Source: Mantamonas sphyraenae STR306
Taxonomy: Eukaryota; Protista; CRuMs
NCBI GenBank assembly: GCA_026936335.1
Contig: JAPMXV010000003.1
Span: forward strand, 186,001-250,000
DNA length: 64,000 bases
Reading direction: 5' to 3'
Position 1 is the first letter of the stretch. Every line of letters begins with the position of its first letter. A program made the translations under genes and the position numbers. Below the pieces are notes generated by a model. The model saw nothing but the letters and a program-made list of their open reading frames with translations. It searched no databases and was not told the DNA's origin. Positions 52,765-57,364 of the stretch are shown here, piece after piece.

Positions 52765-53441
52765 TCACGCTTCGTTGAGGCTGGCGAGCAGCTTGTTCTG
52801 CTTGTTGGCCGCGCGTGTGGCTGCAGAGGAGGACACTTCTGCATCGATGCGTTCCACCATGTCCTCGATGTCTGCTTTGTACATTTGTTCCTGCTCGGCG
52901 TGCTCTTCCAGCTCATCCTGCAGCACGCGTGCCCGGTCGCTCATCAGCTGCGTTGCTTCGACCGCTGTCAGCCCAAACGCAAGGTTCTGTGTGTGTGTGT
53001 GTGTGTGTGTGTGGTATCATGATGAGAAAGAGGAGCGCGATGTGAGAACAAACCAAGAGGGTATCCACGAAGCATCGGGAAACCGGGAGGGGCATGTGAG
53101 GCTGGAGCACGCACGTCGTCCAGGGTGATCAGCGCGCCATCGTTGCGCTCCTCCAAGTGTGCACTGATCTGCTCCTCAACCTCCTCTTTGAGCATCCGCC
53201 GTTGTTCCACAAAGGCATCGTACAGCGTTCGCATCTGCGGATGGTGTCTGTGCAGTGTGTGCATACGTGTGTGTGGCACGTGTGTGTGAGCAGACGGCCG
53301 GCGCCACACGCTCTCGGAGCGCTCAACACACCGGAAGGACTCGTCAAAGAAGGCCAGAAAGGAGTCAAAGTCCATAATGTCGATGGTAGAGTCTGTCAGC
53401 GTGTTGCTGATGGCCTCTACATCTGCATCACGGTTGGACAT
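52765..53441 (-). CDS. Putative Cnl2/Nkp2-like inner kinetochore protein (3 exons)
   Basis: Spliced product MSNRDADVEAISNTLTDSTIDIMDFDSFLAFFDESFRHHPQMRTLYDAFVEQRRMLKEEVEEQI followed by a coiled coil; resembles the Nkp2 N-terminal pattern as recalled. Confidence 0.6.
52988..53013. repeat. (TG)n microsatellite abutting an intron acceptor on the minus strand
   Basis: Reads ...cacacacacag|AAC on the coding strand. Confidence 0.9.
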
Positions 53442-53612
53442 GGCGTGTTTCGTTGACGCACCGGGCGCAGGTGGTCTGTTCATTCACAGCACACGCACTT
53501 CACCACACACATCCGAACAGGGCAACCCTGTGGACATGGAGCGTAGAGGAAGACTGCGTTGGAGGTGACAACAAAAGGCGTGCTGCGTTGGGACAACCAA
53601 CCTTTCCCCAGC

Positions 53613-54833
53613 ATGGCTTTCGGTCTCGACCTGGATCACCTGGACGATGACGACATTCCAGTGTTGAGAACAGTGGTGCTGGTGGCTGCGGCCATGTCCA
53701 TGTGTGGGGGTCTTTTCATTGTGACTTCGTACCTGTTGTTTCGCAGGACACGGGATTTCTCCATGAAGGTGCGTGTGGGCCGAATGTCCCCCCGTTTCAC
53801 ATGCGTCGTGGCGAGTGGCACCTGTGACCTCCTGTGTGGCCCGTGTGCTTGTTCTGGCTCTGCAATACTGACCATTGGGTTTTCACGTGTGGGCAAACCC
53901 GGGGGGCGACCACAGGTCATTCTCTACTTGACAACATGCGACTTGGGCGTGTCTGTGACCTTTCTGCTTTCGCTGAAGTCACCAGTCCTGGACAAAACCA
54001 CATGTTACGTGCAGTCGGTGATGTTGCAGGTGAGTGGAGGCGGTGTGGGGTGGGTGGAGACAAAGCCGGAGAGGAGAGGGCCTAACGCAAACCCGCCGCA
54101 GTTTTTCCTCGTGGCAGGCTTCTTCTGGACTGCGTTCATTGCACATACCCTGCACACCATTGTCACCAAACCCAATTTCGACGTATCGCGCAACGAAAAG
54201 TGGTACCATGCAACGGCGTGGCCTGTGAGTGCGCTGATTTGCGTGTTGCTGGCGGCGGAAGATGCCTTTGGCCCCACGCCACTGTGGTGCTGGCTCAAGG
54301 GGGACCGGAGCTACTACCGCTTCTTCTGCTTCTATCTCATTCTCATTGTGATCTTTGTGTTCAACGCAGTCACGTATCTGCGCGTGGTTGCCTCCATCAA
54401 GCGCACCATGGAAACGCTGCGCACGTCACGGCTGACAAGCTCACAGATAAGTGCCGACGAGTGGTCCAACACATCCGATCAGGTGTCACGGCATGTGTCA
54501 CGCTACATGATGGTCTTTGGTATTTGCTGGTTGTTTGCGCTGATCAATCGCGTGCAAAACTGGATCGCCCCGCACGACCCGCTCTTTGTGCTCTATTTTA
54601 TGCACTCGCTCCTCTCGCCCCTTCAGGCCTTCCTCAACTGCCTTGTATATGGTTTCAACAAGAAGATCCGTCTGCAGTGGGCCATGCAGCTGCGCCGCTG
54701 GCAGACAAAGCTGTTTGGCGGTGTCGACACAGGCGCCTCCCAGCTCATGCACATGCGAGACGACGACCAATGGTTTTCCGACGAAGACGACAGTGAAATG
54801 GCTGGCCGGCCATCGTACCGACGCATGGGGTGA
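53613..54833 (+). CDS. cAMP-receptor-like (Dictyostelium CAR / GCR1 family) 7TM GPCR, 2 introns
   Basis: SMCGGLFIVTSY, ILYLTTCDL, CYVQ..LQFF.VA.FFWT..IA, WCWL, LINRVQN, PLQAFLNCLVYG. Confidence 0.9.
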   Translation: MAFGLDLDHLDDDDIPVLRTVVLVAAAMSMCGGLFIVTSYLLFRRTRDFSMKVRVGRMSPRFTCVVASGTCDLLCGPCACSGSAILTIGFSRVGKPGGRPQVILYLTTCDLGVSVTFLLSLKSPVLDKTTCYVQSVMLQVSGGGVGWVETKPERRGPNANPPQFFLVAGFFWTAFIAHTLHTIVTKPNFDVSRNEKWYHATAWPVSALICVLLAAEDAFGPTPLWCWLKGDRSYYRFFCFYLILIVIFVFNAVTYLRVVASIKRTMETLRTSRLTSSQISADEWSNTSDQVSRHVSRYMMVFGICWLFALINRVQNWIAPHDPLFVLYFMHSLLSPLQAFLNCLVYGFNKKIRLQWAMQLRRWQTKLFGGVDTGASQLMHMRDDDQWFSDEDDSEMAGRPSYRRMG

Positions 54834-54932
54834 GCAAAGAGGGAGAGAGAGGGAGAAATACGCTGCTGGCAGAGCAAAAAACGGGCCTGCCAGACTGATT
54901 GAATTGATTGAATTGCTGCATTCCAAACACAC

Positions 54933-55935
54933 TCACGAGAGCAGGGCCTGGGCATCGATGGCGCCGGGGGCCCAGGCGGTGTTGGCGTAGATGTGCTGAC
55001 GGCCAAGGAGACCCTTGACCTGAGAAAACTCTTCGTACGAGAGGCGCTGCGGGGCGTTGATGCCGTAGGCGCCGTTGGAAGTGAAGCGAACGCGAGGATC
55101 GACCGAGTTGGGCATGCCTGTGGCGTCGCTGACGGCCTTGAAGAGGGCCTTGACGGCCGAGGTGATGGTGGGGTCGCGTGCAGTAAAGGGACTGGTCGCC
55201 TTGGCGCCCACCACAACGGTGATCACATTCCACGAGTTGCCAGCACTGAGGTGGTTGCCGGCCTTGTTCATGGGAAGGAACTGGGTGAGACGGAGCTTGC
55301 CCGTGTTGTCGCGGGCGAGCAAAAAGTGCGGGTAGCGCTTGCTGCTGGCCATCAGGCCCGTGGCCACCTCATAGTCACCGTTGCTGGGCCACTTTCCATC
55401 CAGGGTGTCGATGCAAAACTTGTTTGCGGCGCCGGCAAATGTGTGGAAGCTGGCGGAGACATGAGTGACGTCCTGTCGCTCCACAGGGATGGCACCGGCC
55501 GAGTTGATCCAAAAGGCGGTGCTCTGGGTGGGTGGTGTCGGTGTGCCTGGGGTGGTGCCCACAGTGGGTGCACACGGCGTCAGGTACGTGCTCTGGGTCC
55601 ATGCGTACGTGCCCGTGCGCGGGTCGGTGACCGCACGCACGCGGGTCCACGACGACGACGTCGACTGCTGCACAAAGGCTTCTGTCAGCTTCGCCGACCA
55701 GATCTTGGTGTAGTAGGTGCCTGGTCCGCTGCGCATGTTCAGGTTGTCCACGCTGGGGCACAGCATGTTCACCGTCTTCACGTACCCAGAGTGCACGTGG
55801 CCCTCCTCGCCCTTGTGCGGGCCTCCCAGCACCTGCACGCTGATCCATGAGCCCGTGACACTCTGCTTGATGAACACCGTGTCCGTGCTGGCGGTCCACA
55901 GCAGGCGGTAGCTCGTGTTTGCGGCGCAGCGCGAT
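54933..55935 (-). CDS. Bacterial-type SH3b domains plus N-acetylmuramoyl-L-alanine amidase-like domain (degenerate active site; 5' end not found)
   Basis: SH3b LNMRSGPGTYY...W...AWTQSTYL preceded by a partial second SH3b; P/T linker; amidase-like YPHF..TQFLP..AG..RLSYEEF..GLLGRQHI..PGAID. Confidence 0.7.
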
Positions 55936-55969
55936 GCGGAGCACACAAAAGACCGTCTGCTTCCACCCA

Positions 55970-57364
55970 ATGTCGCTGAACGAGCTGTATGATGAGGAGT
56001 TCCTCGAGAGGATGTAGGTGTCTACTGAAGAGTGTTGGAGTGGGGTCATCCAAAACTGCGTGCCCCGGTTGTGTAGGGGGAGGTTCGAATTCTTGACGCT
56101 AATCCGTTTCAATCACAGCAACCACGGCCGCACGCAGGCCAAGGCTGACAACGAACAGCCCATCTTTCTGATGGCGTGTGGTTCGTACAATCCGCCCACA
56201 ATGATCCACGTGCGCATGCTGGGTAGGTTTACTCCAAAGGCTGAAACGGGGGGGGGGCGGGGGTTTCTCGGGAGGGTTTGCGTTACGCCTTGAAAATCAC
56301 CACTGACCCGTTGGCGGGATGTCCATCGCAGCCACGGCACGTGACCATATCAACAAGCACGTGAGCGGCCACAGTGTCATCGGTGGATGCATCACTCCCG
56401 TGCATGTCAAGTACAACAAGCCTGTAGGTGGTGTTTGTGGGACCGCCGGTGTGATTCCCCTCAAACACTGACTCTGTGTGTGTGTGTCTGTGTACAACCT
56501 GCTCCCCCCCCTTTCCCCCCTCTCTCCCCCCTCTCTCTCTCAACTTCTCTCTGGTGTACAGGGCCTCATCTCCAACGAACACCGTCTGGAGCTGTGCCGT
56601 CGCGCGGTGGCCGACCTGGACTTTGTGCGGGTCAACCCGTGGGAAACCATGCAGGACGACTTTAGCAACACGGTGGAGTCTCTCATGCACATGTACAAGG
56701 CCCTCAACGAGGACAAGGAGCGCTACCCGGTGTCCCTGCGCTTTCTGTGCGGGTCGGATCTCCTGGCTTCGTTCAACACCCCCGGTTCCTGGTCAGAAGA
56801 GGATGTACGTTGTTGTTGTGTGGAGGGGTGAAACAAGAGCATGTGGGAAAAACACTGGTCTCAGAGCAATCCTCTCACATCATCTGATGGCGCGCGCGTG
56901 TGTGTGTGTGTGTGTGTTGCGCACAGCAAGAGACGATCTTTGGCACGCTGGGCGTGGTGGTGATTGAACGCCACGGCAGTGACACACAGGCAATCATTGA
57001 GGCCAACCCGATCATGAAGAAGTACCGATCGAACATCATCACGTTCCAGGACCCGATCAAGAACGACATGAGCTCGACGATGCTGCGTTCGTTGGTGTAC
57101 AACGACGAGAGCATCATGTTCCTCACGCCCACCCCTGTCATCCGGTACATCGAGGAACAGAACCTGTACAAGGACTTTGACCCAAAGGCATCCTCGGGAT
57201 TCACCTACAAGATCAAGTCTGACCGTGCGGGTGTCTCCAAGTCGGGCACAGGTCCCATGCTGGTGGCCGGTCTTTCGGCACTTGCCTGCCTGGCCTATGC
57301 CTTTGCCATGGGCACGGCCAACGATTCTTCTTCGTCGTCGTCTTCCTCCTCTTCCTCCTCGTGA
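55970..57364 (+). CDS. NMNAT: Nicotinamide/nicotinate mononucleotide adenylyltransferase (5 exons) with C-terminal hydrophobic helix
   Basis: ACGSYNPPTMIHVRM, TPVH..Y.K.GL....HR, WE, LCGSDLLASF..PG.W, NDMSSTMLR, VIRYI....LY. Confidence 0.92.

Follow-up and report, generated by a model that had tools for sequence, protein, structure and literature searches.

What use does a bacterivorous protist have for a gene built from the parts of bacterial and phage cell-wall hydrolases, when the residues that would do the cutting are gone? The question is raised by an open reading frame (ORF) on the minus strand of a 64,000-nucleotide stretch of the Mantamonas sphyraenae STR306 genome (the window; contig JAPMXV010000003.1, positions 186,001 to 250,000). 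Mantamonas belongs to the CRuMs group; it is small and marine, moves by gliding and feeds on bacteria. The frame, hereafter the window copy, encodes SH3b repeats, a proline- and threonine-rich linker and a C-terminal domain which a first reading of the letters alone (the sequence-only reading) had likened to Amidase_2-type endolysins with substituted zinc ligands. Two paralogs in the same genome, L002 and L003, are central to what follows. Overall, we are confident that the window copy is a catalytically dead, Amidase_2-fold paralog belonging to a eukaryotic family derived from endolysins; the fuller statement, that this dead paralog also binds the bacterial cell wall, we regard as reasonably probable.

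The argument rests in the first place on the fold of the C-terminal domain, which routine searches do not see. When the protein of the window copy was searched against Pfam, NCBIfam, PHROGs and PDB sequences, no match on this domain was returned (NCBIfam had none anywhere in the protein, and PHROGs a single marginal one, restricted to the SH3 part), and a word-based homologue search with residues 150-345 was also empty, a result of little weight given that the nearest relatives are less than 50% identical. An exhaustive profile search seeded by three C-terminal domains reached 672 proteins at E<=1e-3, 18 of them at E<=1e-30, and 43 sequences drawn from it (alignment A3) served as the basis for an AlphaFold model and a family profile. 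Their signature reads, in order, LHTTEG, PHF, IQVE, an invariant Arg and GHQHVPxNxHWDPG. With this alignment the AlphaFold (AF2) model of the window domain reached a predicted local distance difference test score (pLDDT) of 95.5 and a predicted template modelling score (pTM) of 0.92, and with the three paralogs alone AlphaFold gave an unusable model (pLDDT 43.8). Compared with the PDB by Foldseek and VIA-align, the model matched 78 chains at Z>=8, and all 50 of the entries listed (Z 11.4-15.8) have the Amidase_2/PGRP fold, the mixed alpha/beta amidase fold common to T7 lysozyme, AmpD and the PGRPs. The top match extends over 152 residues with a root-mean-square deviation of 2.5 (PlyP100, Z 15.8), followed by AmpD (15.7), AmiA (15.3), AmiE (14.9), XlyA (14.4) and LytA (14.2), with PGRP-SD (13.3) and T7 lysozyme (11.9) further down.

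Other lines of evidence agree. Searched against PDB sequences, the family profile finds XlyA (E 3.6e-5) and no PGRP; the ESM Atlas neighbours of the domain are Amidase_2 clusters (score 0.94); and 10 of the 43 family members show weak matches to Pfam Amidase_2 (PF01510), a model with a cut-off of 26 bits, on which relatives score 21-24 and the window copy, L002 and L003 have no match at all. The Amidase_2 fold of the domain is therefore established, and with it a divergent subfamily that profiles and structure detect and Pfam does not capture. The resemblance to Amidase_2-type endolysins noted in the sequence-only reading, which had proposed a Foldseek comparison, is borne out by strong structural matches that are all of the Amidase_2/PGRP type, and is visible to deep methods alone.

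Does the domain still work as an enzyme? In AmpD, H34, H154 and D164 are the zinc ligands, E116 is the catalytic base and K162 the catalytic lysine. We mapped these residues by global profile alignment to Escherichia coli AmpD (sequence from NC_000913), at 14% identity, and every one of the five is replaced in the window copy (Table 1); in addition, Thr stands in place of the invariant Gln located two residues ahead of the catalytic Glu. The motifs in which substitutions had been noticed by eye, KFCIDTLDG (residues 184-192), GRQHI (323-327) and TAWAPG (331-336), are where the alignment places the three zinc-ligand sites, at D188, R324 and A334 exactly as the sequence-only reading had located them. 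Of 139 family domains, 114 carry the eight-column motif HTQEHHHD, as does L003; the states in L002 and in a further, unrelated member, P0014, are MTQMRHMD and YTQGRHGD, and the window copy, with DTTVRHAA, is the most degenerate of all 139.

These losses are concentrated. Among positions conserved at >=80% in the other 136 members, the window copy retains none of six active-site residues and 15 of 17 others, including PHF, the Arg of APQRLS, the second His of the GHQH motif and WxPG. If the test is limited to the residues that the AmpD mapping had singled out in advance, five in number, every one of them lies within the 8 lost positions of 23, a hypergeometric probability of ~0.002. With each of the three zinc ligands replaced, and with them the catalytic Glu and the His that corresponds to Lys, the window copy is predicted to be unable to cleave the N-acetylmuramic acid-L-alanine (MurNAc-L-Ala) bond: its domain should neither hold zinc nor activate water in the manner of Amidase_2 enzymes, and we refer to it as a pseudo-amidase on that basis. 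One could imagine that other residues have taken over catalysis, D188 and H326 binding a metal, for example, since Asp can ligate zinc and all three paralogs have kept H326 (family H175). Such a takeover strikes us as very improbable, for the general-base Glu has become Val, two of the three ligand sites are Arg and Ala, and the Lys/His-equivalent position is Ala; we know of no Amidase_2 enzyme that functions without these residues.

Read as an ORF, and as covered by an unspliced RNA-like contig, the frame has no internal stops and no introns, and the intronless reading, the Pro/Thr linker and the three quoted motifs all recur in our translation. The N-terminal part scores 19.6 bits on Pfam SH3_3 (PF08239), over two stretches and with E 1e-3, against a gathering cut-off of 27, and the homologous SH3b region of L002, 46-58% identical to it, scores 53.9 bits. 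The sequence-only reading was correct in seeing SH3b here and undercounted it at one and a half repeats: there are two, the first with a degenerate N-terminal motif (RCAAN against RSGPG in the paralog).

Where, then, did an amidase-type gene without a working active site come from? A six-frame scan of the organism's own assembly (25,061,354 bases in 78 contigs) uncovered the two diverged paralogs, at 53-55% identity to the window copy. L003 is the catalytically intact paralog for which the sequence-only reading had suggested a search, with the full HTQEHHHD motif. Its upstream exon encodes a signal peptide of the classical type (MNAKVAILLLACIAMVNA) and leads into an SH3b repeat, one of two in all, and its amidase domain matches the endolysin family phrog_17214 (1.5e-10). 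L003 is likely to be the active N-acetylmuramoyl-L-alanine amidase of Mantamonas sphyraenae. L002 is built differently: a signal-peptide exon (MTRTAVLLLAFALLASLVAA) and an intron precede a single frame of 871 codons. A leishmanolysin domain comes first in it (Peptidase_M8, E 2e-97, with its HEIGH motif preserved); next are two SH3b repeats (SH3_3, E 2e-14), and an amidase-type domain forms the C-terminus. That last domain is partly dead, with M, M, R and M at four of five key positions and the Asp kept, and the leishmanolysin protease is apparently active and secreted, making L002 a candidate wall-targeted secreted protease. The G+C content at third codon positions (GC3) of the window copy, 0.82, is similar to that of the paralogs (range 0.82-0.88).

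The history of the family can be read from a maximum-likelihood tree of 139 domains with supports from the Shimodaira-Hasegawa-like approximate likelihood ratio test (SH-aLRT). Its main split separates a clade of 35 rows, with the window copy inside it, from 104 other rows (SH-aLRT 98). Nine members of the 35-row clade were checked beyond this genome's three copies, and all six that could be placed are eukaryotic. They include the ancyromonad Fabomonas tropica and the euglenid Ploeotia vitrea, both from EukProt; the clade also takes in uncultured protists, and three of its contigs carry eukaryotic genes (Ras, RCC1 and coronin; TFIIF and FBPase; Suf/HAT, PFK and a split H+-PPase). Among the members, many are equipped with signal peptides, modules rich in Cys, transmembrane tails or a hevein domain. 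In P0003 the domain is accompanied by a hevein-type chitin-binding domain, and P0005 and P0009 are both long, rich in Cys and furnished with transmembrane tails. P0014, at the C-terminus of a 678-residue protein of the same eukaryotic clade, is another, independent dead copy (Y, G, R and G at key positions).

On the 104-row side, the members checked match phrog_17214 and carry PG_binding_1 or SH3_3, and two adjoin integrase and WhiB genes. A tblastn search with L003 found Brevibacterium and Streptomyces phage endolysins only, at ~30% identity, and the best viral structural matches to the model are the Lysin A amidase domains of Gordonia, Arthrobacter and Mycobacterium phages; the window copy itself did not reach phrog_17214 in the PHROGs search. 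Within the eukaryotic clade, the window copy pairs with L002 as its sister (support 99), and L003 joins the two (support 95), on branches of 0.35 for the sister stem, 0.38 and 0.41 for the two sister terminals and 0.13 for the L003 terminal, and the two sisters have in common a His-to-Arg replacement at the second zinc ligand. Taken together, the placement in the tree and the shared replacement point to an old transfer of an actinophage-type amidase that founded the eukaryotic family, to later duplication in the Mantamonas lineage, and to a loss of catalysis once an intact paralog had duplicated, in the ancestor that the window copy shares with L002. The window copy is a duplicate that arose inside this genome, in a eukaryotic family already established, and not a recent transfer. 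The sequence-only reading had called it a horizontally acquired gene, and this holds true of its deep origin only, since the copy nests in a eukaryotic clade at SH-aLRT 98 and has paralogs in its own genome. Domain libraries leave this eukaryotic family of endolysin-derived amidases unannotated, and we found no description of the protist family, or of a dead derivative, in the literature.

The eukaryotic setting holds at the locus itself. An intronless frame with bacterial or phage domain types is what bacterial or phage contamination, or a chimeric assembly, would also look like. Each side of the frame, however, has a spliced eukaryotic gene no more than 100-150 bp away, one for a multi-pass membrane protein to the left and an NMNAT gene to the right, and joints of the GT..AG kind in both, which are our reason for treating run X3 as RNA, bear out the statement of the sequence-only reading that the frame sits between two intron-containing genes (the NMNAT introns from X3 joints are 56014-56118, 56222-56331 and 56424-56561). 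The DNA contig from X1 and X2, which may be the source of the assembly, crosses both ORF borders in one piece, running from 53000 to 56461, the gap beyond it being a skipped repeat, and resumes at 56546; X4, an independent low-depth sample, bridges both ORF ends (54779-54964 and 55652-56252). With two diverged paralogs in the same genome, one of them carrying introns, and a GC3 like theirs, contamination and chimerism are excluded for practical purposes, as the sequence-only reading had argued from the neighbours. The same reading had named a lack of expression as a point that would count against it; instead, an unspliced RNA-like X3 contig lies over the ORF, at a depth of 60 against 25 and 44 for the neighbour genes, in contigs that carry neither strand nor true level. 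X3 cover of lower depth (14-22) goes on upstream of 55731.

An alternative account is a transcribed relic: a 5'-truncated partial duplicate of the leishmanolysin-SH3b-pseudo-amidase gene, or of its ancestor, that lies beside the NMNAT promoter, is transcribed from a bidirectional region and yields no functional protein, or a truncated, non-secreted one. We hold this to be unlikely, if by no means far-fetched, and several observations made at the 5' end of the frame weigh against the reading we prefer and for the relic. There is no in-frame ATG ahead of codon 69, no hydrophobic leader follows M69 or M79, and no minus-strand (CT..AC) splice joint upstream of the frame occurs among the X3 joints, so that neither a start codon nor a signal peptide is visible, whereas both paralogs have classical signal peptides; the sequence-only reading had left this point aside. 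The frame overlaps the NMNAT start codon by one base, 55970 being common to the NMNAT ATG and, on the opposite strand, to the first codon of the window frame; the two are head-to-head with no intergenic DNA, so either their 5' ends overlap or the gene is truncated. The 711-nt X3 contig terminates at 55731, where it runs into Illumina adapter sequence (AGATCGGAA). This point, 3 bases past the M79 ATG and thus below both candidate ATGs, may be where many molecules end, perhaps the 5' end of a transcript. To these can be added the degenerate motif of the first SH3b repeat, an active site more degenerate than in any other of the 139 members, and a terminal branch ~3x that of intact L003. Nei-Gojobori ratios of nonsynonymous to synonymous change (dN/dS) among the paralogs are 0.47-0.69, saturated and under strong GC3 bias, and hence uninformative; the part before M69 has the highest of the three domain regions, 0.69, in values that are likewise saturated. 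The 5' end of a long-functional gene may have been lost recently.

At the same time, the frame has remained in better order than a relic would lead one to expect. It continues open upstream of 55970 to 56021, where a TAG at 56022-56024 closes it, and its 345 codons (362 in full) are free of stops and frameshifts at ~45% amino-acid divergence from the nearest paralog. In neutral simulations on the window ORF, with substitutions only, indels ignored, and an amino-acid divergence p of ~0.3 taken from the terminal branch, the frame was still stop-free in ~1-3% of cases. This result and the 15 of 17 non-catalytic signature residues retained argue, at the level of sequence, against long neutral drift, and the GC3 of 0.82, as in the paralogs, also speaks against a relic. 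Moreover, there are no stops ahead of codon 69 either, and this stretch has 46% identity to L002; it was therefore probably translated through most of its history.

One possible solution to the missing start can be pointed to. A candidate 5' exon upstream (Table 1) is the only one that fits both phase and splice motifs; no read joint supports it, it runs antisense to NMNAT exon 2, and the N-terminus that it encodes is weakly signal-peptide-like. All searches and folds reported here used the window ORF without this exon. The TTG "start" of the window copy is an artefact of a bacterial ORF caller.

What might a dead amidase be for? SH3b repeats are established cell-wall-binding modules. We picture the ancestral state as a protist family of SH3b-plus-amidase cell-wall hydrolases, whose amidase descends from actinophage-type endolysins with an AmpD-like His/His/Asp site. 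The window copy is a lineage-specific duplicate in which the fold and most of the structural signature residues were kept and catalysis went, and its pseudo-amidase together with two SH3b repeats most likely forms a non-catalytic peptidoglycan-binding module. The job of such a module is suggested by its fusion to a secreted protease in L002: there the same module, at the C-terminus of a leishmanolysin, would anchor the protein to bacterial prey. Consider, by extension, the stand-alone window copy, presumably secreted as well: it could act in feeding as a lectin-like wall binder, coating or holding prey, for example. The sequence-only reading's proposal of peptidoglycan binding for prey recognition or digestion is likewise an inference.

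The dead domain might instead be a regulatory pseudoenzyme that binds or modulates an active paralog, or some other hydrolase, and peptidoglycan binding would then not be its main role. A possible partner exists in L003, in the same genome, and there is precedent for inactive hydrolase domains as regulators in the degenerate LytM factors EnvC, NlpD and DipM, which modulate bacterial amidases (PMC10336132). Nonetheless, the protease fusion in L002 fits a targeting module better and the SH3b repeats indicate wall binding, and on this analysis we would rate regulation as improbable.

If peptidoglycan binding is the function, the obvious parallel is with the non-catalytic PGRPs of animals, such as Drosophila PGRP-SA, PGRP-LC and PGRP-SD and the human PGRP-I domains. 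The fold is the same (Z 12-13), and in both cases zinc ligands and catalysis were lost, the PGRPs having kept the peptidoglycan groove and acting as wall binders or sensors. The comparison made in the sequence-only reading is therefore apt, with the same fold and all three zinc ligands lost. There are also differences. The family profile finds the phage/Bacillus enzyme XlyA and no PGRP, and the nearest relatives are actinophage endolysins; the ancestral zinc site is of the AmpD-like His/His/Asp kind, whereas that of PGRPs ends in Cys; the window copy has lost all ligands as well as the catalytic Glu, and the PGRPs just one ligand; and it has N-terminal SH3b repeats, with a peptidoglycan binding that is predicted. 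The family profile, the tree and the actinophage relatives all speak against descent from the animal PGRP lineage.

The closest non-eukaryotic relatives, the amidase domains of actinophage endolysins (phrog_17214; Brevibacterium phage AGM, Streptomyces phage phiSASD1; Gordonia and Mycobacterium Lysin A), at ~30% identity to L003, share the signature LHTTEG ... IQVE ... GHQHVPxNxHWDPG with the family, and in them too the amidase is paired with wall-binding domains such as SH3_3 or PG_binding_1. They differ in having kept all catalytic residues, in an N-terminal position of the amidase and in their phage or prophage setting. Enzymes of the AmpD/AmiD type share the fold (Z 15.7) and a layout of His/His/Asp, Glu and Lys that aligns column by column with the family, but AmpD is a cytoplasmic bacterial anhydro-muropeptide amidase, 14% identical, and the window copy is without all five of its residues.

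Among protists, Trichomonas has laterally acquired peptidoglycan hydrolases with SH3b domains, of the NlpC/P60 and GH19 class B types (PMC12612818; 10.1101/320382). As described in the portions of these reports available to us, they resemble the Mantamonas proteins in being secreted, in their bacterial or phage origin, in their tandem N-terminal SH3b domains and in being thought to target bacteria; they have other catalytic folds and are active, and those portions describe neither a dead derivative nor a protease fusion.

What appears to be new here is a PGRP-like loss of catalysis that, as far as alignment and tree can tell, arose independently in a protist from an endolysin lineage. We would go further only tentatively, to the proposal that a deep-branching CRuMs phagotroph reinvented the PGRP solution independently: a phage endolysin amidase would have lost its zinc site and become a peptidoglycan-recognition module, used both on its own and as the targeting arm of a leishmanolysin, within an unannotated eukaryote-wide family. 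Should the dead domain indeed bind peptidoglycan, it would represent a second, independent origin of PGRP-like bacterial recognition, from the actinophage endolysin branch and in a lineage near the base of Amorphea. In this context, the three paralogs are more than a set of duplicates; they are a natural series within one genome, comprising a probable active enzyme, a dead module on a protease and a dead stand-alone copy, in which the passage from hydrolase to recognition module can be studied. The unannotated family, present in several unrelated bacterivorous protists, also bears on how phagotrophs gained their tools against bacterial walls.

Table 1. Features of the window copy, its surroundings and its paralogs (positions in the window unless a contig is named)
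Feature	Position	Strand	Details
Open frame (window copy)	54933..55970	-	345 codons plus stop (54933-54935); two SH3b repeats, Pro/Thr linker, putative pseudo-amidase domain
SH3b repeat 1	55767..55931	-	Residues ~14-68; from alignment to L002, equivalent region SH3_3 2e-14
SH3b repeat 2	55581..55748	-	Residues 75-130; best Pfam SH3_3 stretch, E 1e-3, below cut-off; homologous to the SH3_3 region of L002 and L003
Pro/Thr-rich linker	55518..55574	-	Residues 133-151; from translation
Amidase_2/PGRP-fold domain, catalytic residues gone	54936..55517	-	Residues 152-345, 194 aa; from AF2 model, Foldseek and VIA-align, family profile
D188	55407..55409	-	Zn ligand 1 site; family His37 (His 99%); AmpD H34
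T251 and V253	55212..55220	-	Sites of family Gln (99%) and catalytic Glu102 (98%; AmpD E116)
R324	54999..55001	-	Zn ligand 2 site; family His173 (His 99%); AmpD H154; Arg also in L002
A332 and A334	54969..54977	-	A332: family His181, AmpD K162; A334: Zn ligand 3, family Asp183, AmpD D164
First in-frame ATG (M69)	55764..55766	-	Next M79, 55734-55736
Candidate 5' exon	56117..56163	-	ATG at 56163; donor GTGATT; acceptor GCAG ending 55957; correct phase
RNA-like cover of the ORF	55042..55731	.	One unspliced 711-nt X3 contig, depth 60
Left neighbour, multi-pass membrane protein gene	53559-54843	+	Two confirmed introns, near 53767-53915 and 54026-54101 (X3 joints)
NMNAT gene, first coding exon	55970..56013	+	Divergent; ATG 55970-55972
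L002 (loci L002/L011)	contig C3:300374-302990	+	~60 kb from the window copy, same contig
L003	contig C4:~91980-93415	+	All catalytic residues (H, E, H, H, D); at least two introns

Two minor observations concern the downstream side of the window copy. The RNA contig of the left neighbour stops at 54843, ~90 bp from the window copy's stop codon, the 3' ends of the two genes converging there. Within the ORF, the X3 depth in the bin 55004-55170 is 4178 against ~60 nearby, and a break in the RNA contig at 55042 leaves 12 letters unmatched. The paralogs do not account for this deep bin, the DNA identity there being just 67-70% to L002 and L003; a very abundant transcript that contains the same short word may be the cause.

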